Below are positions 2,164 to 59,021 of a stretch of 64,000 nt of DNA, one piece after another. Every line of letters starts with the position of its first letter. The first letter of the stretch is position 1. The translations under genes and the position numbers were made by a program. The notes beneath the pieces were generated by a model. It saw nothing but the letters and a program-made list of their open reading frames with translations, ran no database searches and was not told the origin of the DNA. Where the stretch lies: the sequence record NC_049851.1; one strand, given 5' to 3'.

Positions 2164-3630
2164 TTACAGCACGATCAGGTCAGTGTTGTGCGCGTAAGGC
2201 TGCGCAAACCGCTTTGCCAGTTCGGCCCCGGCTTCGGCCGCCGCACGCACCTCACTGAACGTCTGCTCGTTGAACAGCTTGCCGTCTTCGTAGACAGTGC
2301 GCAGGATGTTTTCCCGAGCCCCGAGTTCCGACGACTGAATGACTTCGAGGATGCCGCTCTCGTTGCGGACCACCGCGAGGTGCCCCTTGAGCGACTTCTT
2401 CGACGACGCAGTGATCGGGTCCTTCATAATCCCGGTCCATGCCTCGCGGCCATTCGTGACAGCACTTGCCTTCTGGGCGTGACCCAGTACATCCCGGTTG
2501 GTGGCTTGAAGCAGTGCGCCACCCATGCCGAATGCTACGTTCTCGGCACTGAACCCATGGAGTTCGAGGGCCCGCAGAATCGCGATGATCGAATCACGGT
2601 TCACACCGTCACCCTGAATCACACGCACGCTCGGATGGAGCACCTTGAAGCCCTTGCTGTTGGTCGTCGTCCCGAAGCTTGCGGCCAGCGACTTGACGCA
2701 GTACAGCACCACGGAAACCGGGTCTCCCGAGTCCGGGCGAATGACGACACGCCCACCCTTCGACAAGACCTTCTCCTTCAACTGCTTGCCCCAGATGTTG
2801 TCGACAGCATTGTAGATGTCGTATGCATCCGAGACGCAGGCATACACGCGCCCTTCCCCACCGAACTTGTCGATCATGTTCGAGTAGGCGTCGGCTTCGC
2901 GGTCGCGACCCCACGAAGTCACCGTGAAGTGCTCCATGGCCGGGATCGAGAAACCAGCGGCAGTTTCGTCGTAGTAACGACGAGCCGCCACCAGTGCCGG
3001 AACCGTATCGGTCCCGAGGAAGTTCACGAGGTGGGCCATGCCACCCAGTGCTGCCGTTTGCACCGACGATGCGCCACGTGCTCCGAAGTCGTGCAGCATA
3101 AACTTAACTGCGGACTCAGGATCGTCACACGTGCGGTTGAGAAACGCGCGCAGGTCCTGCTTGATGTGCCACGAGAGCGTTGCGACAGCCGTTGCGTACC
3201 ATACAGCGCGCAACAGTCGCGTCTCCATGAACTGACCGAGTTCTGCGAGTCCCGGAGCCGTGTTCCGCACTTGGTAATACGGGACGTGGTTCGGGACGAG
3301 CGTACCCTCGGGCAGAGCCGAAATGCTCACGGGCGGAAGACCACCGTGCTCGTTGACGATACGCATGAACTGCTCGTACGGGAACGTTCCCGAGTGAGCC
3401 ATCGCGATATCACGAGCCTCTTCTACTTGTTCGCGCGTCAGCGGGTTTGCCACGATATTCCGCAACTCTGCCTGAAGGCCGAAGAAGATGGAAGCGCGGT
3501 ATTCCTTGTCCGACCGTGCCGAGCAGTACGACGATGCGAACTGGACTCCGGCCGGAAGCTGCTCCGAATGGCTCCATTTGTAGCTGTCGGTGTCGAGCGC
3601 GAACGAGATAGCGAGATTGGTATTTTCCAT
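2164..3630 (-). CDS. nadV: nicotinamide phosphoribosyltransferase (NAMPT)
   Basis: Motifs DTDSYKWSH, HDFGARG, SIPAMEH, VSDAYD, IRPDSGDP, VIQGDG, FGMGGALLQ; start set at ATG 3630 behind GGAG. Confidence 0.95.
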   Translation of the reverse strand: MENTNLAISFALDTDSYKWSHSEQLPAGVQFASSYCSARSDKEYRASIFFGLQAELRNIVANPLTREQVEEARDIAMAHSGTFPYEQFMRIVNEHGGLPPVSISALPEGTLVPNHVPYYQVRNTAPGLAELGQFMETRLLRAVWYATAVATLSWHIKQDLRAFLNRTCDDPESAVKFMLHDFGARGASSVQTAALGGMAHLVNFLGTDTVPALVAARRYYDETAAGFSIPAMEHFTVTSWGRDREADAYSNMIDKFGGEGRVYACVSDAYDIYNAVDNIWGKQLKEKVLSKGGRVVIRPDSGDPVSVVLYCVKSLAASFGTTTNSKGFKVLHPSVRVIQGDGVNRDSIIAILRALELHGFSAENVAFGMGGALLQATNRDVLGHAQKASAVTNGREAWTGIMKDPITASSKKSLKGHLAVVRNESGILEVIQSSELGARENILRTVYEDGKLFNEQTFSEVRAAAEAGAELAKRFAQPYAHNTDLIVL

Positions 3631-3707
3631 GATTTGCAACTCCTGTTGCTGAAAGGTTGAGAAACCGTGTGCTCTTGCTCACGGGTACTACGGCACTGCT
3701 CACGCGC

Positions 3708-4031
3708 TCACTCTTGGAGTCGCGCTTCTTCTGACGGCAGGCCAATGTCTTTTGCACCGGCCGCCGCCAACTCCTTGATCCTGTTGATCGTTGTTTCCTT
3801 CATGGAGACATACGAACGCCTTCCGTCTTCCGTGCGCACGGGCACCAGACGCGACTTCGGGAACTTGTTGATAGCGCAGTCCATCGCATCGTGGATGATA
3901 GGTGTCGGGGCCGTTCGGAGACCACGACATGCTGCCTGATCCTTCGGCATGAACTGCCACGCAGGCGGCCCATCGATGATTCGGATTTGAGCGTTGTCCG
4001 GAAATTCGAAAGTTGCCACGCACACCCCCAT
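3708..4031 (-). CDS. Bro-N-like DNA-binding protein
   Basis: FEF..QIRIIDG.P.WQF..KD.A...GL and V.T.DG.R...E pattern resemble the Bro-N domain; has its own promoter. Confidence 0.5.
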   Translation of the reverse strand: MGVCVATFEFPDNAQIRIIDGPPAWQFMPKDQAACRGLRTAPTPIIHDAMDCAINKFPKSRLVPVRTEDGRRSYVSMKETTINRIKELAAAGAKDIGLPSEEARLQE

Positions 4032-4049
4032 GAATTAAACAGTACAGCT

Positions 4050-4078
4050 ATTCTGCCAGACTTCGGTCGATCAGTCAA
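4050..4078 (-). promoter_or_regulatory. sigma70-type promoter
   Basis: TTGACT-17 bp-CAGAAT. Confidence 0.5.
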
Positions 4079-4081
4079 ACA

Positions 4082-5188
4082 TTAATCGACAGGGATGAGA
4101 TCGATCATCTTCTGGACGATGAAGAAGTGGTCGCTGTACATTTCCTTCGGGTCCAGCAGGCCGAGCGGCACCCACCGAACTTCCGCGAAGTCGTCGTCGG
4201 CCTTCACCTCGATCAGCTTCTCTGCGTCGTTCAGCAGGTACAGGTAGGCGTGCGTGACGATACGACCACGCGTCTCGCCACGGTTCGGGTCCGAGAACAC
4301 ATGCTTGAATCGGAAAGCCAGCTTCATCGTGTCACGGCTCACCCGAATGCACGTCTCTTCGACAGCTTCACGGCACGAAGTGTTGAAGATGGTTTCGCCT
4401 GCGTGGGCAAACCCACCCGGCAGCGCCCACAGGCCCTTGCCCGGATTGAACTTGCGTCGCCCCAGCAGAACGTGGCCACTCTGGATGATCACCGAGTCTG
4501 CCGTCGTCATGATCGGCGCGTAGCTCTTGCCCTTGCCATCGCGACCACGGTAGCCGTGCTCTTCCAGATACTCCTTCGAGAACTTGATCTCGGCGTTGAG
4601 CGCGTCGATCACGTCGAGGTGTGCCCAGCCCCAGTGTTTGAGATAGGATTTCACTTCCGGATGCACGAGTTCCGTGATATCCGTGATGCCCTGTTCCCAA
4701 CACTGACCGCCACCGAACAACAGGTTGCGGACCGTCGTTGCGTCCAGCACTTCTCCGTTGACATTGAAACTGTTGACGCAGCGCGAATCCCACTGCGGGA
4801 ACTTCTTCAGGTAGTAGGACGAGTCGTCCTTCGAGTGGCCGATCAATCGGACCTCGACCTCGTGACCGCCAGCCCGAATCATCTGCACGTAGCGGTCGAC
4901 CTCGCGATGCACGGCCGCCATCCACTTGAAGTCGTTCTCGTGGAGGAAGTCGTCCAGCGTTTCGAACGCGATCTTGCTCACATTCTCCTGCTCACCATAG
5001 ACGGCGCGAAGCATGTCGATCACTTCGCATGCGGTCCACGGATTCTTGACGGTGCGCGGACGGTTTGCCGAGCCCACCAGAACCAACGTCAGGTCCGAGA
5101 TCGCAAGACTCGTATCGATGATCTGCTGGTGGCCGAGGTGGAGAGGGCGAAAGCGGCCGATGAAGACCGAAAGTTTCTTGATGCTCAT
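4082..5188 (-). CDS. nadM: bifunctional NMN adenylyltransferase / ADP-ribose Nudix hydrolase (NadM-Nudix)
   Basis: FIGRFRPLHLGH (HxGH), GSAN, KNPWT; Nudix box GGFAHAGETIFNTSCREAVEET. Confidence 0.93.
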   Translation of the reverse strand: MSIKKLSVFIGRFRPLHLGHQQIIDTSLAISDLTLVLVGSANRPRTVKNPWTACEVIDMLRAVYGEQENVSKIAFETLDDFLHENDFKWMAAVHREVDRYVQMIRAGGHEVEVRLIGHSKDDSSYYLKKFPQWDSRCVNSFNVNGEVLDATTVRNLLFGGGQCWEQGITDITELVHPEVKSYLKHWGWAHLDVIDALNAEIKFSKEYLEEHGYRGRDGKGKSYAPIMTTADSVIIQSGHVLLGRRKFNPGKGLWALPGGFAHAGETIFNTSCREAVEETCIRVSRDTMKLAFRFKHVFSDPNRGETRGRIVTHAYLYLLNDAEKLIEVKADDDFAEVRWVPLGLLDPKEMYSDHFFIVQKMIDLIPVD

Positions 5189-5545: not shown

Positions 5546-7444
5546 TTACGTCAAGTACTTCGTGGTGAATTGCGCCCACGTCATGGCTTTCGATCCAGCC
5601 TTCTCGATCTTGCCCACGAACTTCGCGCCTTCACGGTACAGCAGCACCGTCATCTTCGAGCCGTAGGGCACAACCGTGCCGCCCAGACTTTCGACTTTGG
5701 CCTCTTCGTCCTTTGAACGGTAGCTCGTCCATGCGACGTTGACGCCCGCCAACTTGGTGCCTGATGCCTGCTTCTTCTGCGGCAGATCGCCGTCGATCTT
5801 GATCATGCCTTTGAGCGGCCGATACCATTTGCGGAACTCATACACGCCCTTGACCAGAACTTCGATGGTGGCGTGTTTGAACCCACGAATCTTCCCGACC
5901 TCGTTCCAGATGCCGTGCCTGTCGAGGTTGCAAAGCGTTTTCATGCTCATGCCTGCCTCTTCAAGCTGTGCCAGTTTCCGGACACCCATACCGCCTTCGG
6001 TGAAGCAACCGCTTGCCACCATCAGGGACTTGAGCGAGACCGGAGCGCATAGCACACGCTTCAGTTCCCGCATCATCTTCGGCCACTGTGCCTTTCCGAA
6101 CTCGGCAATGCATCCAGCCTCGAACGCCGATGGCAGCGGCTGTGTCGCCACCTGCACCAACTTGTCGGTCGTCGTGATGCCCATATCGTACAGCTTGGCC
6201 AACGACTTCTCCGCGAACTGCTCGATGCCGAGCGTCGTGCAGAAGAAGTGCAGGCGACGCACGTCTGTCACCGTCGTGTCATTGTCGAGTGCATACACGA
6301 ACCGACCACGGAACTCATACGGGCCCGGGGGCGGCGTCCATGCCGCGCGCTTGACCGTCCCCACGATCTTCGGGATCACGTCGCCCGAGCGCAGAATCCG
6401 GACAAGCGCCCCCACACCGATACCCTTCTCCTTCATCCACGTTGCATTGTGGGCCGTTGCCTGCGTTACAGTCACACCGTCGATCTCAATAGGTTTGATC
6501 TTGATCTTCGGTTGCCAGCGGCCGAGGCGCGTCTTCTTCCACTGGATGGCAATCACCTCTACCACATCGGCGTTTGCTTCGTCATTGACCTTGAACGCGA
6601 ACATTCGCTTTGGCTTGTCCGCGCTATCGTAGTCCATCACGAAGTCCACGGGGCTCACAACAAACCCGTCCAGCCGGTATGGGCTCAGGTAGCGCGCCTT
6701 GTTAAGCTGCTCCGTCAGGTACGCAGCATCCAGCTTGTCCAGACGGCCATAGGTAACGACCTCGAACCCCCACGTGTCTGCGTTCTTGAGGCTGCGCAGC
6801 AACAGCGTTTCGTCCGCATTCGGGTATATGCCGAGCACGACCAGTGACACGTCCTTGAGAGCCCGTGACGACCACGACCGGTTGAACAGGCCGTTGACCA
6901 TAGCCCGTGCGTTCTCGAACCCGTTCTCACCTGCTGCCTGCTTGCTGTACTTCTTCTGGAACTTCTCGTCGGCCATCAGGGCTTCGAGGCGCAACACGGT
7001 CTGCGCCTTAGTCGGGATAGTGGCCGGGATACGCTTGTATTCCACCAGTTTCGGGATCAGGTACGACACGTCGCGCCCAACCTCACCGTCACCACGGGTG
7101 ATCAGCATTCTGGGCTTGCGGCCCTTATACACGAGTTGCAGGCTCGTGCCGTCCAGCTTAGACATCCCGAAGTACTTGGTGGTCGAGGGCTCGCGCTTTG
7201 CGAACTTGGGCACGTCTTCCGGATACGCCTTTTCCAAGCTTGGCATAAAGTGCACGAGTTCGACCGCTTCCTTCTCGTCCGCTATACGTACGCCAGTCTG
7301 GTCGAGTTCTTTCCAGTCCGGCGCACGTTTGCGAAGCTGGTCTTCGAGGTGATCGAATTCCGGATCGCTGATAATCTCCTTCTCTTCGTTGTAGTACGCC
7401 CACTTGGCGCGCACGTACAACTCCTTCATTTCAGAAAGCTTCAT
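5546..7444 (-). CDS. ligA: NAD-dependent DNA ligase
   Basis: YYN..EIISDPEFDHL, MPSLEK, KLDG adenylation motif, TRGDGEVG, RSGDVIPKI, C-terminal BRCT-like region; start at ATGA overlap 7441-7444. Confidence 0.93.
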   Translation of the reverse strand: MKLSEMKELYVRAKWAYYNEEKEIISDPEFDHLEDQLRKRAPDWKELDQTGVRIADEKEAVELVHFMPSLEKAYPEDVPKFAKREPSTTKYFGMSKLDGTSLQLVYKGRKPRMLITRGDGEVGRDVSYLIPKLVEYKRIPATIPTKAQTVLRLEALMADEKFQKKYSKQAAGENGFENARAMVNGLFNRSWSSRALKDVSLVVLGIYPNADETLLLRSLKNADTWGFEVVTYGRLDKLDAAYLTEQLNKARYLSPYRLDGFVVSPVDFVMDYDSADKPKRMFAFKVNDEANADVVEVIAIQWKKTRLGRWQPKIKIKPIEIDGVTVTQATAHNATWMKEKGIGVGALVRILRSGDVIPKIVGTVKRAAWTPPPGPYEFRGRFVYALDNDTTVTDVRRLHFFCTTLGIEQFAEKSLAKLYDMGITTTDKLVQVATQPLPSAFEAGCIAEFGKAQWPKMMRELKRVLCAPVSLKSLMVASGCFTEGGMGVRKLAQLEEAGMSMKTLCNLDRHGIWNEVGKIRGFKHATIEVLVKGVYEFRKWYRPLKGMIKIDGDLPQKKQASGTKLAGVNVAWTSYRSKDEEAKVESLGGTVVPYGSKMTVLLYREGAKFVGKIEKAGSKAMTWAQFTTKYLT

Positions 7445-52413: not shown

Positions 52414-53483
52414 GCGCTACTCCACTCTTTCTCGACGACGCTCCGCACCTGACGCCACTCGGTTTCGCAAATCGTCTCTACGTCGATAGCGTCCAGCACT
52501 CGATGCTGCGCCTGAATCGCGAGCGTACTGCCTACCATGATATGCCCGTCTACGGTGTGGATGAGGTTCAGAAACTTCTGCGCTACGCACAGGAAATGCG
52601 TGATCTGGCGGACCGTTTGCAGAGTGGGCGCTGATGCCGATCTACAGAGAAGGTATCGATCTTGACCAGTATGTCTCGACTTGGGACGAACCGGACAGCG
52701 TTGAGGGTTTAGGCTACTGCTACCGATACACGGACGTGAAGTACAGTCCGGGTGTAGACGAGTGGGATGATCCGCTTCCACGCTCGCCCGGGACCCACTT
52801 GGGCATTCACGTGCACGAATACAAGGTGCTGCGTGAAACCAAGTGCGGCTTCTGGTTCTACGACACTTACGAGGGCCGTGAGCGCTTCATCAACAACTCG
52901 TGGACCAAGAAGCATGCGCTCCGTTCGAAGGAAGCGGCACGCGATTCGTATATCGCGCGCAAGGAAAAGCAGATCACGCTGCTCAAGCGTCAGATAATCG
53001 ACGCCGAAGAGTTCTTGCGCATGGCCCGTGACCAACAAGCGCGCGGCGTCGCCCAATCTATCTGGAGGTAACATGGGTCTGGAATACTACGCACTGAACC
53101 ACGCACGCGCCGAAGCCGTGTCGTTGGGTCGCCTCGGCTTTCGCTTCGACGCGTTGCTGAACGTGACGGACCAAGCGGAGTTCGAGCGTGCGTGTTTCGA
53201 ATCGCTGGTCGCGTCCGGTTTCGACTATGCACGCGCTGCCGAGTTCGCACACGACTTCTACGATTTCGGGGCCGACGAAATATGGAACGACGGACAGGAC
53301 GTGTACGAATATTTCTCGTGCTACCGCGTGGTCGACGCGCTCGACCACGAAGAGATCGGGAGCAAGCTCGGTGACTACTTCGTGCGGTCCGGTATGCTTC
53401 CGGTCGAGGCCCTGAGTCTGCGTCACCCGCGCGTGCAGATTGTGCTGGGCCGAGCCAAGATCACGCAACCCAATTTGAATTGA
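52410..53483 (+). other. hypothetical ORFs 52410-52634, 52634-53071, 53073-53483
   Basis: Coupled ORFs with RBSs. Confidence 0.6.
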
Positions 53484-53487
53484 CCTG

Positions 53488-53516
53488 TTGACGGTGTAGT
53501 AAAGACAGCGTATAGT
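53488..53516 (+). promoter_or_regulatory. composite promoter for the tRNA cluster
   Basis: TTGACG-17-TATAGT with GTAGTAAAGA inside the spacer. Confidence 0.75.
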
Positions 53517-53525
53517 TCAGGACTC

Positions 53526-53602
53526 GGGCGGTTAGCTCAGGGGTTAGCAGCGTTCGGCTCATAACCGAGGGGTCGCGGGTTCGAATCCCGCACCGCCCAC
53601 CA
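53526..53602 (+). tRNA. tRNA-CAU (Met, or Ile2 if lysidine-modified)
   Basis: Cloverleaf; TTCGG-CT-CAT-AA-CCGAG; TTCGAAT; encoded CCA. Confidence 0.9.
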
Positions 53603-53658
53603 CACAGAATAGGAGGCAATCATGAGTAGATTCTAGTGAACCAACTGGAGGTGTTCTC

Positions 53659-53946
53659 ATGAAAGCAAAAGCGTTTTACCATCGTGTTTGTAACTACGGC
53701 CCGGGCGGCTACCACTGCCCGTGCTGTGGTCCCGCACCGAGCATGCGTCGTAAGGAGCGTCAGCAACAACGACGCAAGTTCCATCGACTGCTTGACGTTC
53801 TGGACAAGTTTGACACCGAAGTCGAAATCGAATACGACAACCTCGTGCTCAACGATTTCGACGACGAGCGTCACGACTACTACAACGGCTGGGGCGGTGA
53901 TCCCAGCCTGCACGATGAGTGGAAGGATTGGAAGAAGGCAGCTTGA
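53659..53946 (+). CDS. hypothetical protein with CPCC motif
   Basis: RBS GGAGG. Confidence 0.6.
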   Translation: MKAKAFYHRVCNYGPGGYHCPCCGPAPSMRRKERQQQRRKFHRLLDVLDKFDTEVEIEYDNLVLNDFDDERHDYYNGWGGDPSLHDEWKDWKKAA

Positions 53947-54010
53947 CCGTACTGCACCGCAAAGCCTTAGATGCGGTGTGCCGCGAGAACGTGAGCGGTG
54001 CAGTGCACCT

Positions 54011-54096
54011 GCCCGGGTGGCGGAATTGCTAGACGCGACGGACTCAAAATCCGTTGGCCCTAGGCCGTGTGGGTTGGAGTCCCACCCCGGGCACCA
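54011..54096 (+). tRNA. tRNA-Leu(CAA) with C19/G56 elbow
   Basis: ACGGA-CT-CAA-AA-TCCGT, long variable arm, CCA. Confidence 0.9.
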
Positions 54097-54098
54097 TC

Positions 54099-54137
54099 GC
54101 GAGGGTGGCGAAATTGGTAGACGTGGCGAAATTGGTA
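54099..54137 (+). pseudogene. 5' fragment of a tRNA-Leu with a 15-nt direct duplication
   Basis: GCGAGGG-TG-GCGAAATTGGTAGACG; GTGGCGAAATTGGTA at 54105-54119 and 54123-54137. Confidence 0.8.
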
Positions 54138-54177
54138 ATCCCCAATTTTATTTCAGTAACCAACGTGGAGAAGATTC

Positions 54178-54888
54178 ATGCTAGAACTGAAAAACGACAT
54201 GCCGATTTTGGCCAAGAAGTTGTCCGGTGTGTATGGTCACGAGATTCGTATCATCGGGCCGTACGTGGACAAGAGAAACGGGCGTAAGCTCGTGGACATA
54301 AAGGGTGCGCCCCGTTCCTCGGGAATTAACAAAACCGTGCAGCTTGCACGTGCGCGCCTAGAAGTAAAGCTTGGTCGACGCCTTGTCGATGACGAGACTG
54401 TCGACCACAAGAACAACGATTGCACGGATGACCGTCCGAGCAATCTTCAGTTGCTGACGCACGCAGAGAACTCGGCAAAGCAGACGAAGGAAACGCGTAG
54501 TCGCTCGGCTGAAGCGTCTCGCACCGCCGAGGCGCGTTCCGCTAACAGCAAACGCAATACAGGTGAGAAGAATCAAGCTGCCGTCCTTACCGATACTGAA
54601 GTGAAAAGGTTTCGCACACTTTTCAGTAAGGGTAAAATGACGGTCAAGCAAATCGAAGATGCGTCGGAGTTGACAAATCGTTCGGTTCGTAATATGCTTG
54701 ACGGCCTGTCGTACAAAACGGCAGGCGGACCGCTCCGCATAGCAGGCTCTGTTGGTCGCGCATCCTCGTTGTCAGAGAAGCACAGGCAGTACATAGCGAA
54801 TCACGCAGAACTGTCAGCCGCGCAGATTGCAGAAGAACTTGACGTGAGTAGGTATGCAGTGATACGATACCGACGCACGCTTAACTAA
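54178..54888 (+). mobile_element. HNH homing endonuclease
   Basis: LARARLEVKLGR.L...ETVDHKNND.TDDRPSNLQLLT.AEN plus a C-terminal HTH-like region. Confidence 0.85.
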
Positions 54889-54889
54889 C

Positions 54890-54976
54890 GGGAGTGTGCT
54901 GGAATTGGTAGACGGAACGGATTTAGATTCCGTAGGCCGCAAGGTCGTGTGGGTTCGAATCCCATCACTCCCACCA
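54890..54976 (+). tRNA. tRNA-Leu(TAG)
   Basis: ACGGA-TT-TAG-AT-TCCGT, variable arm, CCA. Confidence 0.92.
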
Positions 54977-55006
54977 CTACACGAAATTTTAGTTAAAGGT
55001 ATTTAA

Positions 55007-55246
55007 GTGCCGCCAAGCATCGAACAGGTAAAACTTATACTCAGATCAGCAGCATTGTCTCCGAGCAGCAGTCAGTTGTCTATTTCTGGCTTTGACGATA
55101 TCATGAAGGCAGCAGAGGAAGCCTATTGTGGAGATAGCCGAGCCATGCTCACAAACGTCCGGGAAATTGCCTTGCAGTTTCCGGACAATACGATGATGAT
55201 GACGATTTTGGCGCTGTATTCTGAATCCATGCTGAGTATGCATTAA
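55007..55246 (+). CDS. hypothetical protein (79 aa)
   Basis: GTG-start ORF, lower GC than the flanks. Confidence 0.45.
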   Translation: MPPSIEQVKLILRSAALSPSSSQLSISGFDDIMKAAEEAYCGDSRAMLTNVREIALQFPDNTMMMTILALYSESMLSMH

Positions 55247-55260
55247 GCGCAATCCCCACA

Positions 55261-55310
55261 GTCCTGCCGGTCGAAAGGCCGTGAGGGTTCGAATCCCTTT
55301 CCTCGCACCA
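55261..55310 (+). pseudogene. 3' fragment of a tRNA-Leu
   Basis: GT-CCTGC-C-GGTC-GAAA-GGCC-GT-GAGGG-TTCGAAT-CCCTT-TCCTCGC-ACCA; TCCTCGC pairs with GCGAGGG at 54099. Confidence 0.85.
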
Positions 55311-55404
55311 CTTTGGATTGTAGGCGTAAATCGAGCGGGACTTCCCCACCCACTCGATTAGGTATGGTACACCTTATAGACCGTCGCCTACAATCCAAAG
55401 TGGT
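55307..55404 (+). ncRNA. unknown structured RNA, 20-bp perfect closing stem
   Basis: ACCACTTTGGATTGTAGGCG (55307-55326) / CGCCTACAATCCAAAGTGGT (55385-55404), internal hairpin AATCGAG/CTCGATT. Confidence 0.55.
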
Positions 55405-55477
55405 TGTGGTAAAGATGTAGTGTGCTTTGCCTTTGAAGCGCGGGCGCTGTGGTTCTCAGGCCACGACAGCGCCCAAC

Positions 55478-55553
55478 GCCGGTTTAGCTCAGTTGGTAGA
55501 GCAGCGCCCTTGTAAAGCGCAGGTCACGGGTTCGAGCCCTGTAACCGGCACCA
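55478..55553 (+). tRNA. tRNA-Thr(TGT)
   Basis: GCGCC-CT-TGT-AA-AGCGC; CCA. Confidence 0.92.
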
Positions 55554-55574
55554 CTAAACAATAACAACGAGGTT

Positions 55575-56138
55575 GTGATGAATACGCATGAGGCTTACGA
55601 GATCGTCGATAGACTGACGCCGGTATCGGTCAGGAACCTCGAAGACGCGTACGTACGGTTCATGGAAATGGCGCTTCTGGTCGATCCACACCCGGAGACT
55701 GAAGACCGGGCCACACGGGATCGTGAGACATACACTGAATTCCTGCTACCGCCCGACGAGAACGGCAATCCCGTGATTTCGGTCCCGGGCATGCACCAGT
55801 TTCTGTCCAAGATCACGGGCCATCCACTACAAACCTGCGTAGCCTTCGACTATGTTGACTTCCATCGCGTGCACGGCACGACGGTAGAGGACGCGGAACT
55901 CGCTGGCTACGTTTAAGGACGGACCATGGAAGAAGACGCATACAGGTTCAGTGTGGCAGCGCTCAAAAGCGAGTACGACGCTGAACTGCTCGAACTGCGC
56001 AAGACAGTGCTTGAAGGTCGCGGTGACGTTGCTGGGTTTATCAAACTCAAGGAGTCGCTTGACTCAAGGCTGAAGGACCGCGTTAGCGCGGTTACTGGCG
56101 CACGCAGTCAAACACAGAACAAGTTGCTGTACAACTGA
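55575..56138 (+). other. hypothetical ORFs 55575-55916 and 55926-56138
   Basis: ORF track, RBSs. Confidence 0.6.
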
Positions 56139-56144
56139 ACAAGA

Positions 56145-56221
56145 CTCCGCTTAGCTCAGCCCGGTAGAGTACGTGATTTGGGATCACGGGGTCGCAGGTT
56201 CAAATCCTGTAGCGGAGACCA
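56145..56221 (+). tRNA. tRNA-Pro(TGG)
   Basis: CGTGA-TT-TGG-GA-TCACG; C1:G72, A73, CCA. Confidence 0.92.
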
Positions 56222-56239
56222 CACAACATAGGAGGTGTC

Positions 56240-57512
56240 TTGGAAACCACTTACGACTACAGCCTTACGTTCGACCTGACTGACATCATCGTGTTCGTTC
56301 TGATCGCGATCATGATCAAGATGGTCATCGACATCGTGCGTGAGCGCATGCGAATACGCAGGCTCCGACGCGACATGGGGGCAAACGGCAATCTTCCGTG
56401 CATCACGATCTCGGGTAACGACGATGTGTCGATCTCGGGTCTTGTGTACGAAGGGCGGCCCATCCCCTCGGTCGATATCAAGAACAAAGCGCTGTTCGTC
56501 GACGGTCAGTTCAAGCGCCGCCTCGCCCGCAACAGCCGTGTCTACAACCGTGGCATCGGAATCTTCGCGGACGGCAAGTACATGGGGTAATACCATGCGC
56601 AGTATCTTTCACATTTCGGTCGGCTCCGATAACTGGAACCCGACCGAGGACGAACTTGCGGGCATCGTCCGCAAGTTCAAAGAACTGGAAGCAAAGCAGG
56701 GTCAGCGTCAACAGCTTCCCGATACCCGCAAGATCATCCACATCAGTGTGGGTGCTGAGGATTGGACGCCTACCGCAGACGAACTGTTGGCCATCGTCAA
56801 TCAGTTCCAGTATGCAGACCTCGATCCGCTCGGTGGGTGGATTGCGACGCGTCACGGTATCAAAGTCACTGACATCGAGACCGCCGCACAGCCCACGCTG
56901 GTGGTGAACGGCACGACCCACGAAAGCGAGGCTCGTGCTTCGCTACGTCAGGACTCCATCGACCGGCTTGAGGCCATCCGCGAAAACCTGCGTACGTTCA
57001 AGCTGAGCACGCTCGATGTCGACACACTGATCAATCGGTTGTCGACGTATCAACTTTAACCGAAAAGCTTAGGACAACAAATGAAACAACTCAACACGCA
57101 ACGCCGCTTCGAATGCCTGACACCGGAAGGTACATGGGTCTCCGTGCACTGGGAGCAACTGGAACCGGGCGACATGATCCGCCTCCTGCCCGCTGTCGGC
57201 ATCACCGAGGACGTTCCGCCGACCGACGTATTCGTCGTCATGGACACGCCTACCGTGAACGTGCGTTCGGTGAACGAAATCCGTGCCGAACAAGCAGCCG
57301 CAGCGCAGCGTGAAGCGCTGGCCAACACGGAAGGTGTCGATGCTATCCAAGCAGCGCAGCGCGATATCGACGCAGCCGTCGAGCAGATGAAGCCGGTAAC
57401 AGAGGCCGTGGCAAAGGTGGCGCACGCAGTAAAGGCCAAGAAGACGCCGAGCCCGAAGGTTCCGGCACCGGCACGCAAGCCGCGCACGCGCAAGGTCGCG
57501 ACGCCGAAGTAA
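56240..57512 (+). other. hypothetical ORFs 56240-56590 (N-terminal TM), 56595-57059 (internal repeat), 57081-57512 (basic tail)
   Basis: ORF track, RBSs. Confidence 0.6.
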
Positions 57513-57624
57513 TGGCCGTGTAGTAAATAGGTTGGGTGAGCGCGGAAACGCAATCCCCAATTTGAGTTGTACAGAAAACTAGTGCTGGTTGCCGGATGCA
57601 GTTGTTACCCGGAACAGCACACGC

Positions 57625-57714
57625 GGATGGGTGCCCGAGTGGCTAAAGGGGGCAGACTGTAAATCTGCCGGGCCTCAGTGTCCTACGTTGGTTCGAATCC
57701 AACCTCATCCACCA
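57625..57714 (+). tRNA. tRNA-Tyr(GTA)
   Basis: GCAGA-CT-GTA-AA-TCTGC, long variable arm, CCA. Confidence 0.92.
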
Positions 57715-57767
57715 GAACATAAGCAGGAGCCCTGAGCATCAGGGCATCAGGGCAACAAGGAAAAGCA

Positions 57768-58049
57768 ATGCCGATTAAGCCGCTGTATGACAAGGTGGTG
57801 GTGCGTACCACCGACACAGACCGTACGACTGTAGGGGGCATCGTGATCCCCGCTGCTTCGCTCAAGGCGAATCAGGCTGTCGTGGTCGCTGTCGGTGACG
57901 GCCACCTTATGCAAGACGGTACGCTTCGACCGCTGTCCGTGAAGGCAGGCGACGTTGTGTACCTCTCGCATGAAGGCTCCGAGATCGAAGTCAACGGTGA
58001 AAAGCTTCGCGTCTTCATCGAAGGCGATCTGATAGGAGTCCTCAACTAA
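57768..58049 (+). CDS. groES: co-chaperonin GroES
   Basis: IKPLYDKVVV, GGIVIP, VVAVGDG, VKAGDVV, GSEIEVNGE. Confidence 0.92.
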   Translation: MPIKPLYDKVVVRTTDTDRTTVGGIVIPAASLKANQAVVVAVGDGHLMQDGTLRPLSVKAGDVVYLSHEGSEIEVNGEKLRVFIEGDLIGVLN

Positions 58050-58058
58050 GCAGTACAT

Positions 58059-58135
58059 TCCCCGTGAGCAAGCTAGGCGACTGCACCGGACTGTTAATCC
58101 GGCATTGCGTGGTTCGAATCCACGACGGGGAGCCA
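58059..58135 (+). tRNA. tRNA-Asn(GTT)
   Basis: CCGGA-CT-GTT-AA-TCCGG; CCA. Confidence 0.92.
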
Positions 58136-58139
58136 ATCA

Positions 58140-58242
58140 TGAATAGGTCATGAGTAAGGCAGATCACTCAATCCGGAAACTCAAAAGGTAATCCGGGTAG
58201 CAATGAGCATCCTGTAAGCCGAGACGATGATTGACTTATTCA
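58140..58242 (+). ncRNA. unknown structured spacer RNA
   Basis: Closing stem TGAATAGGTCA/TGACTTATTCA with internal hairpins TGAGT/ACTCA and CCGGA/TCCGG. Confidence 0.45.
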
Positions 58243-58244
58243 GA

Positions 58245-58320
58245 GCGCGGGTAGCTCAGTTGGTAGAGCACCGGACTGAAAATCCGGGTGTCGCTGGTTC
58301 GAGTCCAGCCCTGCGCACCA
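58245..58320 (+). tRNA. tRNA-Phe(GAA)
   Basis: CCGGA-CT-GAA-AA-TCCGG; CCA. Confidence 0.93.
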
Positions 58321-58322
58321 GC

Positions 58323-58438
58323 GTTGTGATCGAGTGAAAATCGTAGGAAGGGGCCGATTACCCTGACCGCAATCTGTAGGTGGACCGGCTGGCCCTCATC
58401 CTGCTAGTGTAGATTTTTCCCATGTGGTTTCGATCAAC
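58323..58438 (+). ncRNA. unknown rod-like RNA
   Basis: Nested stems TGATCGA/TCGATCA, GAAAATC/GATTTT, GTAGGA/TCCTGC, GGGGCC/GGCCCT separated by bulges. Confidence 0.45.
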
Positions 58439-58539
58439 TAATCATTGTGTGGTTGTAGCGCACTAAATCAGACGGCCGGGCTCCGGAGCCCGCGTACCAT
58501 ACCACCCCGGATGGAAACCGTTGAATATTCCGGGTCGAT

Positions 58540-58616
58540 AGGGGTGTAGCCAAGTTGGTTAAGGCAACGGATTTTGATTCCGTCATGCGTAGGTTCGAAT
58601 CCTACCGCCCCTTCCA
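58540..58616 (+). tRNA. tRNA-Gln(TTG)
   Basis: ACGGA-TT-TTG-AT-TCCGT; discriminator T; CCA. Confidence 0.9.
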
Positions 58617-58694
58617 GAACACGCAGTACTGCTGCCTCCCCCTGCGGTGAAATCCCGAAGGACTTGCGGGCAGCATCGAATAATCAGGACTCCA

Positions 58695-59021
58695 ATGAAC
58701 GCAATCAAGAACGCGACCGCAACAACCTTCGACGCAGATGTCATGAAGGGTGAAGGTCTCATCCTCGTAGACTTCTGGGCACCGTGGTGCGGCCCGTGCA
58801 AGATGCTGGCTCCGACACTGGACAAGATCGCACAAGAGCGCGACGACCTCCAGATCGTGAAGGTCAACGTCGACGAGGAATCCGAGAACGAAGTCGCAAA
58901 GACGTTCGGAGTCCGTGGTATTCCGTCACTCATGCTCGTGCGAAACGGTGCAGTGATCGCGCAACGCGCTGGAGCACTGGCCAAGTCGCAACTGGAAGCA
59001 TGGATCGACGCGAACAAGTAA
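58695..59021 (+). CDS. trxA: thioredoxin
   Basis: LVDFWAPWCGPCK, VRGIPSL. Confidence 0.95.
   Translation: MNAIKNATATTFDADVMKGEGLILVDFWAPWCGPCKMLAPTLDKIAQERDDLQIVKVNVDEESENEVAKTFGVRGIPSLMLVRNGAVIAQRAGALAKSQLEAWIDANK

Follow-up and report, generated by a model that had tools for sequence, protein, structure and literature searches.

An HNH nuclease cassette carrying its own tRNA-Leu(UAG) lies inside the disrupted tRNA-Leu(UAG) gene of Burkholderia jumbo phage BcepSauron

The results described below reveal that in Burkholderia jumbo phage BcepSauron a 1.1-kb cassette, carrying an HNH nuclease gene and its own tRNA-Leu(UAG), sits inside, and has destroyed, the original tRNA-Leu(UAG) gene of the phage. 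The same layout of a nuclease gene with a replacement tRNA recurs in unrelated phage contigs, which points to a selfish element that needs no intron because it brings a spare copy of its target; cleavage and homing are, however, inferred.

Structure of the interrupted tRNA-Leu locus

The window analyzed here is a stretch of 64,000 nucleotides of the BcepSauron genome (NC_049851.1, record positions 62001-126000), which is 100% identical to BcepSauron MK552141.1. The preliminary description of this stretch, made from the sequence alone, reported a tRNA-Leu gene split in two by a cassette containing an HNH gene, an intact tRNA-Leu(TAG), and a 79-aa ORF. This observation is confirmed, every listed element being present at, or within 2 nt of, the positions given. 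The locus is composed of the following features.

54011..54096 (+), intact tRNA-Leu(CAA), 2 nt upstream of the split gene, in the same array and on the same strand, identical in BcepSaruman
54099..54123 (+), 5' fragment of the resident tRNA-Leu(UAG): acceptor 5' strand GCGAGGG, U8-G9, and the D arm up to position 24
54124..54137 (+), left end of the insert: a second D-arm copy without an acceptor strand (TGGCGAAATTGGTA), which forms the 15-nt duplication together with G54123
54137..54144 (+), left copy of the 8-nt direct repeat AATCCCCA
54143..54177 (+), 5'UTR of the HNH gene, with the conserved CAATTTTAT (54143-54151) and the ribosome-binding site GGAG (54167-54170, 7 nt before the ATG), the latter read from the sequence
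54178..54888 (+), HNH endonuclease gene, 236 aa (BcepSauron_205, annotated 'endonuclease')
54890..54976 (+), cassette-borne replacement tRNA-Leu(UAG), canonical class II, with discriminator A and encoded CCA
55007..55246 (+), ORF79 (BcepSauron_206), with a GTG start, an orphan and possibly not a real gene; cargo or filler of the insert
55251..55258 (+), right copy of the 8-nt direct repeat AATCCCCA, near the right end of the insert, which ends at 55260
55261..55310 (+), 3' fragment of the resident tRNA-Leu(UAG): last loop bases, 3' anticodon strand, variable arm, T arm, acceptor 3' strand TCCTCGC, and ACCA

The sister phage BcepSaruman (MK552140.1; 93% ANI according to the Matilda preprint) covers the region except for the insert and has, at the same place, a single uninterrupted 87-nt tRNA-Leu(TAG) gene (positions 3598-3684 of the Saruman locus, designated L001). 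The alignment of the two phages is unbroken up to 54123 (..GTAGACG) and again from 55261 (GTCCTGCC..). The 5' fragment is identical at 24 of 25 nucleotides to positions 1-25 of the Saruman gene (L001 3598-3622), the one difference being G7 against A7, and the 3' fragment is identical at 50 of 50 nucleotides to L001 3635-3684. An origin of the two fragments from different tRNA genes had been named in advance as an outcome that would overturn the reading; instead, both fragments come from one gene. BcepSauron has 1137 nt (54124-55260) in place of the 12 nt CAGCAGGTTTAG (tRNA positions 25-36), which correspond to the end of the D stem, position 26, the 5' anticodon strand, and the loop through the anticodon. 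The polymorphism rests on these two genomes, since only one close relative is available, and searches of IMG/VR with the flanking ORFs found only distant jumbo phages, whose arrays lack this tRNA-Leu.

The 15-nt duplication GTGGCGAAATTGGTA is located at 54105-54119 and 54123-54137. The short repeat near both junctions, described initially as AATCCC, is 8 nt long and is the longest word shared by the two junction windows, with a chance probability of about 1.3% in shuffled windows; its meaning is unexplained. The acceptor strands GCGAGGG and TCCTCGC pair 7/7 with one G-U, whereas the Saruman strand GCGAGGA pairs perfectly. Two points of the preliminary description need correction: the homologous 5' part ends at 54123 and not at 54125, and the destroyed allele had the same anticodon (TAG) as the delivered tRNA, so that the substitute is an isodecoder and not a tRNA with a different anticodon.

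ARAGORN and Rfam call the intact tRNA-Leu(TAG) at 54890-54976 (Rfam tRNA, 53.8 bits, E 8e-10), but no tRNA at 54099 or 55261. The cassette tRNA, which starts 1 nt after the HNH stop codon, is identical to the resident tRNA-Leu(UAG) of Saruman at 64 of 87 positions, and keeps the anticodon but differs in the anticodon stem, acceptor stem, and variable arm; all five anticodon-stem pairs differ (ACGGA/TCCGT against GCAGG/CCTGC). The insert has a lower GC content than the window (50.5% against 57.6%). ORF79 has a GC of 47% and a GC3 of 54%, against about 65-74% GC3 in neighboring genes, gave no Pfam or PHROG hit, and has no homologue other than itself among 5.8 billion proteins. No donor carrying the same cassette tRNA was found: an exact 26-nt pattern from its anticodon arm gave no match in the genomes of 185,579 species and matched only Sauron itself in IMG/VR, and a distant blastn search of the whole insert against 50,697 phage records found only generic tRNA-Leu similarity.

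The nuclease gene is intact. The protein matches Pfam HNH_3 (29.6 bits, cut-off 24.8) and, at residues 204-235, HTH_11 (25.7 bits, cut-off 25), with a second HTH-like stretch at residues 137-180 scoring below cut-off. Of the 15 PHROG families hit, 13 are annotated HNH endonuclease, one 'endonuclease', and one is of unknown function. The catalytic residues are conserved, Asp76, His77, Asn89, and Asn98 being invariant in seven homologues. The AF2 model (pLDDT 75) has helical bundles in the HTH regions, and the best PDB fold hits are paired-type bipartite HTH domains, though weak (E 0.02-0.3); the match to I-HmuI (PDB 1u3e) is also weak (Foldseek E 0.47), no fold hit was obtained at E<=0.001, and a PDB sequence search gave no hit at E<=1. 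The gene is absent from Saruman, and no paralogue or homologue was found in sequenced phages at E<=1e-5.

Nuclease homologues and tRNA-Leu genes in other phage contigs

Homologues of this HNH protein (32-59% identity) occur in otherwise unrelated phage contigs (loci denoted by L numbers below), and the layout of an HNH gene, a replacement tRNA-Leu that follows or overlaps it, and an orphan tRNA-Leu fragment recurs in at least nine other unrelated contigs. Only the HNH gene is shared between the window and the contigs that carry homologues, so that the gene moves between unrelated phages. Of 50 tRNAs abutting HNH homologues, 34 are Leu, against 14 of 117 elsewhere in the same loci (Fisher 1e-12), although the loci are partly redundant. 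Orphan tRNA-Leu 5' fragments were found upstream in 25 of 68 loci and orphan 3' fragments downstream in 18, and the HNH stop codon lies inside the partner tRNA-Leu in 9 loci.

Both halves of the split tRNA are present and pair 7/7 at the acceptor in Sauron, L004, L019, L020, and L030, with five different acceptor sequences, whereas the cross-locus control reaches 7/7 in 6 of 513 combinations. L020 has the same design as Sauron, with a 5' fragment ending at the same ..GGTAGACG, then the HNH gene, an intact tRNA-Leu(CAA), and a 3' fragment beginning at the 3' anticodon strand. L019 shows a scar-free insertion between positions 31 and 32 of a tRNA-Leu(GAG), with no replacement tRNA, and L022 and L080 show a duplicated 5' half whose acceptor pairs with the same 3' strand as the orphan fragment. 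The motif CAATTTTAT / CAATTTCAT is shared with L004 and L005 upstream of their HNH genes. L005 also has an acceptor-less second D-arm copy before the conserved 5'UTR, and L004 has one D-arm copy fused to that UTR; the relic therefore appears to travel with the cassette.

Predicted behavior of the cassette and alternative readings

The feature is best explained, with fairly good confidence, as a free-standing HNH homing-endonuclease cassette nested inside a phage tRNA-Leu gene and carrying its own replacement for the gene it destroys. The preliminary interpretation, a homing-type cassette that destroys a resident tRNA-Leu while delivering a substitute, is thus supported, having passed every test that could be run here, with the qualifications that the substitute has the same anticodon as the destroyed gene and that cleavage of the empty allele, and hence drive, is inferred. 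The replacement of positions 25-36 of the resident gene by the insert, its integrity in Saruman, the contents of the insert, and the recurrence of the arrangement are established by the sequences themselves, whereas the steps that follow are our deductions. During co-infection, the nuclease would nick or cut cassette-free tRNA-Leu genes in or next to the anticodon arm, and the break would be repaired from the cassette-bearing genome, using the tRNA-derived sequences at the cassette ends as portable homology (D-arm relic on the left, tRNA 3' half on the right). The target site would be destroyed, giving immunity to re-cutting, and decoding capacity would be kept by the cassette's own tRNA, whose divergent anticodon stem would make it a poor substrate. 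In this view, the cassette achieves by carrying a spare copy of its target what intron- or intein-borne homing endonucleases achieve by splicing. Neither cleavage of the gene-less allele and resistance of the gene-bearing one, nor over-representation in the progeny of mixed infections, was measured here, and no such data exist for this enzyme. Since the D arms of the cassette tRNA and of the neighboring tRNA-Leu(CAA) are almost identical to that of the target, immunity must rest on the anticodon arm, which is untested. The junction scars of Sauron (12-nt deletion, second D-arm copy, 8-nt repeat, and extra ORF79) are not those of a clean homing event, and suggest that this particular insertion, or its ancestor, was resolved by short-homology or illegitimate joining rather than by clean homologous recombination; a one-off illegitimate recombination could produce the same picture. 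The two leftover halves are most likely dead remnants.

A broader possibility, about as likely as not, is that these cassettes form an undescribed, widespread class of selfish element in phage tRNA arrays, namely HNH homing-endonuclease genes that live inside tRNA-Leu genes without any intron and make their insertion harmless by carrying either a whole tRNA-Leu or just a new 5' half fused to the resident 3' half. With tRNA-derived ends serving as portable homology arms, such an element could hop between unrelated phages and continually overwrite tRNA-Leu alleles. The family may also couple nuclease expression to tRNA processing, because the nuclease's stop codon often lies inside the partner tRNA. 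Homing endonucleases are thought to persist in essential or useful genes by hiding in self-splicing introns or inteins, or by sitting between genes; this locus and its relatives suggest a third way, to destroy the target and bring a spare. If confirmed, this would explain orphan tRNA fragments and rapid tRNA allele turnover in phage tRNA arrays, provide a natural set of nucleases likely to recognize tRNA-Leu gene sequences, give a tractable pair of phages (Sauron with the cassette, Saruman without) to measure drive directly, and bear on how phages exchange tRNA variants, which has recently been linked to escape from tRNA-cleaving host defenses.

The foremost alternative, though unlikely, is a passive recombination scar, in which a piece of another phage's tRNA array (HNH gene, tRNA-Leu, and ORF79) was pasted into the resident tRNA-Leu by illegitimate or short-homology recombination between tRNA genes, the nuclease being a passenger that played no part and may be inactive on this site. 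The junction scars, the low-GC foreign insert, and the repeat-rich nature of tRNA arrays are in agreement with this reading, as is the swap of another tRNA (Met) of the same array between Sauron and Saruman with no nuclease gene present. However, the same nuclease family is found next to orphan tRNA-Leu fragments and replacement tRNA-Leu genes in many unrelated contigs, and the breakpoints recur, the 5' fragment ending at ..GGTAGACG in both Sauron and L020, and the 3' fragments beginning at the 3' anticodon strand in Sauron, L004, L020, and L030. Chance recombination would not tie one protein family to one tRNA species.

Even less likely is a selected tRNA swap, in which the cassette spread because its tRNA-Leu(UAG) variant is advantageous, for example by resisting a host anticodon nuclease or by being better matched to the charging or modification enzymes of the host, with the nuclease only assisting or hitch-hiking. 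The replacement keeps the anticodon but changes the anticodon stem and loop position 37-38 (TTTAGAT against TTTAGGT), and phage tRNAs and a tRNA-cluster homing endonuclease have been tied to escape from tRNA-cleaving defense (SegB and Septu; PMC13096335). However, no defense system targeting tRNA-Leu is identified here, CUA codons are rare in the window (2.8% of Leu codons), and this reading, which is compatible with the homing model and not truly exclusive of it, does not explain why the resident gene is split rather than simply replaced.

That the split gene is still functional, through splicing of the insert as an intron or through re-pairing of the halves into a split tRNA or an anticodon-less decoy (the lesser alternative of the preliminary description, which gains no positive support), is very unlikely: although the acceptor strands pair 7/7, the isolated halves co-fold at -31.1 kcal/mol, against about -16 kcal/mol when folded separately, and both lie in a co-directional tRNA array and so are probably transcribed, the 12 missing nucleotides include the anticodon and the whole 5' anticodon strand, so that the halves cannot rebuild a decoding tRNA, the sequences adjoining them share the direct repeat AATCCCCA and are not complementary leader/trailer sequences, so that no bulge-helix-bulge can form, and the intact isodecoder in the insert removes any need for the halves. 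An Rfam search of 53000-59000 at E<=1 found only tRNAs and no group I intron or other ribozyme, and no intron model reached the gathering score in L004, L005, L019, L020, L022, or L030. Brute-force joining of the flanks followed by ARAGORN was uninformative, because ARAGORN accepts too many artificial joins.

Comparison with other tRNA-associated elements and homing endonucleases

The closest known system is SegB of phage T4, a free-standing homing endonuclease in the T4 tRNA gene cluster (PMC2330249), which is likewise encoded in a phage tRNA array directly upstream of a tRNA gene, cuts inside tRNA genes of relatives that lack it, and drives inheritance of itself and the neighboring tRNA genes while excluding the recipient's alleles, its expression being thought to be limited by tRNA processing of the shared transcript. 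In Sauron, nine tRNA genes lie on the same strand at 53526-58616, and the insert that distinguishes it from Saruman contains both the HNH gene and a tRNA gene. However, SegB is a GIY-YIG enzyme, whereas the protein studied here has an HNH_3 domain with no GIY-YIG hit and is not a member of that family, although it is inferred to work like SegB. Moreover, SegB lies between intact tRNA genes and recognizes the T-arm, and no split target tRNA or dedicated like-for-like replacement tRNA has been described for it, whereas here the target is specifically tRNA-Leu and the breakpoints are in the D/anticodon region. HNH-type site-specific nucleases encoded inside a phage tRNA gene cluster have also been described (a 2004 study, as cited in PMC2330249); from the citation alone no nested insertion or replacement tRNA is known, and no sequence relationship was tested. 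Searches of the literature found SegB, T5 F-Tfl, mobE, and fractured genes, but no description of an HNH gene nested in a tRNA gene with a replacement tRNA, an absence that is weak evidence because most subscription journals lay outside the texts searched.

I-HmuI and related HNH_3 homing endonucleases of phage group I introns are nicking enzymes that promote homing and share an N-terminal HNH (His-Me finger) catalytic unit followed by an extended DNA-binding tail ending in a helix-turn-helix. I-HmuI is, however, intron-encoded and relies on splicing to keep its host gene working, whereas here no group I intron was found. In the case of mobE in nrdA of Aeromonas phage Aeh1, a free-standing endonuclease gene is inserted inside a gene and splits it in two without an intron, as in the metagenomic 'fractured genes' (PMC2677866). 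In those cases the two gene pieces stay functional, as separate polypeptides or through split inteins, whereas here the pieces are incomplete and function is supplied by a spare copy carried in the insert.

Integrase-type elements that insert into tRNA genes, such as those of Cluster J mycobacteriophages at tRNA-Leu (PMC3706429), also target a tRNA gene, keep tRNA function by bringing a copy of the disrupted part, and leave an orphan partial tRNA at one end. Those elements use a tyrosine or serine recombinase and an exact att core, and restore the 3' part, whereas here the duplicated part is the 5' half or the whole tRNA and the inferred driver is a nuclease. No recombinase is encoded, as the only proteins of the insert are the HNH protein and the orphan ORF79, and the junctions carry a deletion and an imperfect duplication rather than an att core.

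The interrupted tRNA-Leu gene and its counterpart in BcepSaruman

A megablast search of positions 53500-56300 against 50,697 phage records gave a 100% match to Burkholderia phage BcepSauron MK552141.1 at 115500-118300, placing the window at record positions 62001-126000, and the only other close record, BcepSaruman MK552140.1, matched at 95.5% over 59% of the query in two pieces. The two phages share 93% ANI, according to a 2026 preprint on phage Matilda, and both were isolated on B. cenocepacia. ARAGORN finds nine tRNA genes on the + strand between 53526 and 58616, but calls nothing at 54099 or 55261, in agreement with Rfam. The features of the interrupted region are as follows.

54011-54096, + strand: tRNA-Leu(CAA)
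54099-54123: 25-nt 5' fragment of the former tRNA-Leu(UAG) gene
54105-54119 and 54123-54137: 15-nt duplication
54124-55260: 1137-nt insert
54137-54144 and 55251-55258: 8-nt direct repeat, AATCCCCA
54178-54888: nuclease gene
54890-54976, + strand: intact tRNA-Leu(TAG)
55007-55246: ORF79
from 55261: 50-nt 3' fragment of the former tRNA-Leu(UAG) gene

In BcepSaruman, the same array has tRNA-Leu(CAA) followed, 2 nt later, by an intact 87-nt tRNA-Leu(TAG) (positions 3598-3684 of L001, the corresponding BcepSaruman locus). A global alignment shows that the two phages are collinear up to window position 54123 (..GGTAGACG) and again from 55261 (GTCCTGCC..), with the 1137 nt of BcepSauron standing where BcepSaruman has 12 nt (CAGCAGGTTTAG). 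The 25-nt and 50-nt fragments are thus the two ends of one former tRNA-Leu(UAG) gene, which lacks the last D-stem base, position 26, the 5' anticodon strand, and the loop through the anticodon. The only difference in the fragments is G7 in BcepSauron against A7 in BcepSaruman, which turns an A-U pair into G-U. The 15-nt duplication is real, as is the 8-nt direct repeat, whose chance probability in shuffled junction windows is about 1.3%. The split tRNA-Leu gene reported in the preliminary description is confirmed; derivation of the fragments from different tRNA genes, which that description had itself set as the finding that would overturn it, was examined in the alignment, and the outcome is in its favor.

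Two further features of this array were noticed. A roughly 100-nt long hairpin (window 55306-55405; also L001 3680-3786) lies immediately after the 3' fragment of the split tRNA, its 20-bp outer stem (CCACTTTGGATTGTAGGCG / CGCCTACAATCCAAAGTGG) beginning in the ACCA tail of the tRNA; its MFE is -50.9 kcal/mol (z = -7.8), and it is conserved in BcepSaruman with different but still paired bases in the inner stem. It could be a processing or termination signal, or a small RNA of the tRNA array. In addition, the tRNA-Met(CAT) genes of the two phages (window 53526-53602 and L001 3027-3102) are quite different sequences, with different acceptor, D, anticodon, and T stems, while the flanking DNA is 97-100% identical. 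This is a tRNA allele swap with no nuclease gene present, possibly the footprint of an earlier exchange.

Contents of the insert

The nuclease gene, with a GGAG ribosome-binding site 7 nt upstream, encodes 236 aa with Pfam HNH_3 (29.6 bits, cut-off 24.8), a C-terminal HTH_11 (25.7 bits, cut-off 25), and a second HTH-like stretch, and its PHROG hits are HNH endonuclease families. In an alignment with six homologues, D76, H77, N89, and N98 are invariant. An AlphaFold model (mean pLDDT 75) shows a beta-rich N-terminal part followed by helical bundles, but the PDB fold matches are all weak, the best being paired-type bipartite HTH domains (E 0.02-0.3) and I-HmuI 1u3e (E 0.47, 94 columns), so that we use the predicted structure only as mild support. 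No relative of the HNH protein was found in any sequenced phage at E<=1e-5, and there is no paralogue in BcepSauron.

One nucleotide after the stop codon begins a canonical class II tRNA-Leu(UAG) (Rfam 53.8 bits), which is 64/87 identical to the resident gene of BcepSaruman, keeping the anticodon, the D loop, and the T loop, but differing in all five anticodon-stem pairs, in the acceptor stem, and in the variable arm. Promoter-like hexamers, TTGACG-18-TACGAT (with TG), are present just upstream of this tRNA, inside the 3' end of the HNH gene (54839-54868), and TTGACG-17-TATAGT (53488-53516), conserved in BcepSaruman, lies upstream of tRNA-Met at the head of this part of the array; these are consensus matches only. 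ORF79 has a GTG start, no family hit, and no homologue in 5.8 billion proteins, and may or may not be a gene. The insert has 50.5% GC against 57.6% for the window, and the ORF79 part has 45-47%, which fits a foreign origin. No group I intron or other Rfam family was found at E<=1.

Relatives of the nuclease and their tRNA-Leu neighborhood

A search of 5.8 billion proteins found six relatives of the nuclease at 48-59% identity, pattern scans of IMG/VR and JGI metagenomes found 64 more distant loci, and a profile search of 1.84 billion representatives counts 28 at E<=1e-30 and 499 at E<=1e-10. As tblastx shows that these contigs share nothing with the window except the nuclease gene and tRNAs, the gene moves among unrelated phages. 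Its neighborhood is strikingly constant. Of 50 tRNA genes that abut or overlap the nuclease ORF, 34 are tRNA-Leu and three more are an odd tRNA-like gene with a UAG anticodon loop, whereas elsewhere in the same loci only 14 of 117 tRNAs are Leu (Fisher 1e-12, although some loci are near-duplicates, so that this overstates independence). Orphan tRNA-Leu 5' fragments (acceptor strand plus D arm, not part of any called tRNA) lie just upstream of the nuclease in 25 of 68 loci, and orphan 3' fragments lie downstream in 18. In five loci, namely BcepSauron and four homologous loci (L004, L019, L020, and L030), both fragments are present and their acceptor strands pair 7/7.

Acceptor strands of the 5' and 3' fragments, each followed by ACCA
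BcepSauron: GCGAGGG / TCCTCGC
L004: GGGGGTG / CACCCCT
L019: GCGGACG / CGTCCGC
L020: GCCCTTG / CAAGGGC
L030: GCTGGGA / TCTCAGC

Mismatched cross-locus combinations reach 7/7 in only 6 of 513 cases.

The individual cases form a series. In L019 (47% identity), the nuclease ORF is inserted without any loss between positions 31 and 32 of a tRNA-Leu(GAG), its TGA stop overlapping the anticodon loop, and there is no replacement tRNA. In L022 and L080, an orphan 5' part lies upstream, and the nuclease gene ends at or inside the new 5' end of a complete tRNA-Leu (3 nt before it in L080 and overlapping it by 10 nt in L022), the 3' acceptor strand of which pairs with both the new 5' copy and the orphan 5' copy. 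L020 (37% identity) has the BcepSauron design in compact form; the 5' fragment ends at the same ..GGTAGACG and is followed after 13 nt by the nuclease, after 2 nt by an intact tRNA-Leu(CAA), and after 2 nt by a 3' fragment starting at the 3' anticodon strand. L030 and L004 are similar, and L004 even has a second HNH gene (198 aa; 3494-4125) directly after the 3' tRNA fragment of the first cassette, itself preceded by another tRNA-Leu-like 5' fragment (GCCCCGG TG GAGAAATTGG..), so that there are two cassettes in tandem. L081/L082 have an orphan 5' fragment, then the nuclease, then tRNA-Leu(TAG). In a more distant clade of the same HNH family (L028-L048; e.g., L034 at about 2826-3012 and L040 at 190-372), the cassette order is reversed: an orphan tRNA-Leu 5' fragment running through the anticodon TAA is followed by a strong sigma-70-like, near-consensus promoter (TTGACA-17-TATAAT), a complete tRNA-Leu(TAA), and the HNH gene, with a short 3' tRNA remnant after the HNH stop in L029 and L040.

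In nine loci, the nuclease stop codon lies inside the partner tRNA-Leu. In the loci of the closest HNH homologues, an odd 83-84-nt tRNA-like gene overlaps the 3' end of the HNH gene (L005 2778-2860, L004 3340-3422, and L003 about 6578-6661), the HNH stop codon lying in its D region. It has an anticodon loop of TTTAGAA or CCTAGAA (UAG), a short variable loop, 4 extra nt between acceptor and D stem, covarying acceptor stems, and discriminator A. ARAGORN miscalls it as Ile(AAT) in L004 and L005 and does not call it in L003, and it falls below the tRNA gathering score of Rfam in L004 and L005, L003 not having been scanned; it may be a non-canonical tRNA-Leu or a decaying one. BcepSauron, L004, and L005 share a cassette 5'UTR motif (CAATTTTAT) preceded by a D-arm relic, and BcepSauron and L005 both have two D-arm copies, the inner one lacking an acceptor strand. 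The feature termed a 15-nt duplication in the preliminary description is therefore best read as the resident D arm next to a D-arm relic that travels with the cassette.

Inferred mechanism and alternative readings

The insertion and deletion, the intact nuclease, the like-for-like replacement tRNA, and the recurrent architecture are shown, whereas the steps of the following mechanism are our inference. In this view, the nuclease would cut or nick cassette-free tRNA-Leu genes near the anticodon arm, repair would copy the cassette from a co-infecting genome by using the tRNA-derived ends as homology, the destroyed site would be immune to re-cutting, and the cassette tRNA would escape cutting because its anticodon stem differs. 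This is the logic shown experimentally for T4 SegB, which lies in the T4 tRNA cluster, cuts within tRNA genes of phages lacking it, and is inherited at nearly 100% together with neighboring tRNA genes, its mRNA end being thought to be trimmed by tRNA processing (PMC2330249). T5 also encodes HNH nucleases in its tRNA region, as cited in the same paper, and a 2026 paper links SegB-tRNA units to escape from a tRNA-cleaving defense (PMC13096335). We place the element among the free-standing homing endonucleases of phage tRNA clusters; what differs here is that it sits inside its target tRNA gene, without an intron, and carries a spare. Full-text literature searches found no description of a homing-endonuclease gene nested in a tRNA gene together with a replacement tRNA, which, the literature covered being incomplete, is weak evidence of absence. 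The untidy BcepSauron junctions and the extra ORF79 suggest that this insertion, or its ancestor, was resolved by short-homology joining, although we could not reconstruct the event and have no explanation for the 8-nt repeat. Our confidence is high that the structure is real and recurrent, and moderate that it is nuclease-driven; to that extent, the preliminary interpretation of a homing cassette that destroys a resident tRNA while delivering a substitute is supported.

Among the alternatives, a passive recombination scar, which we consider unlikely, fits the junction scars but not the tie between one protein family and one tRNA species with recurring breakpoints. A selected tRNA swap, less likely still as the main cause, is compatible with the homing model and may act alongside it, but nothing here identifies the selective agent, and CUA is a rare codon in the window (2.8% of Leu codons). 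The least likely is a still-functional split gene, since splicing is excluded by the missing 12 nt and the absence of any ribozyme, and a decoy made of the two halves, although thermodynamically possible (co-fold -31.1 kcal/mol against about -16 kcal/mol apart), has no positive support.

Phage contigs carrying HNH homologues also encode tmRNA-like genes inside their tRNA arrays (L019 5362-5744; L064 1833-2233); in L019, Rfam beta_tmRNA scores 110 bits and permuted tmRNA 114 bits, whereas in L064 the tmRNA is an ARAGORN call only. Several nuclease types may share these arrays, as a GIY-YIG (LEM-3-like, NUMOD3) endonuclease gene (L081 515-1300, - strand) lies about 1.2 kb from the HNH/tRNA-Leu cassette in the same contig.
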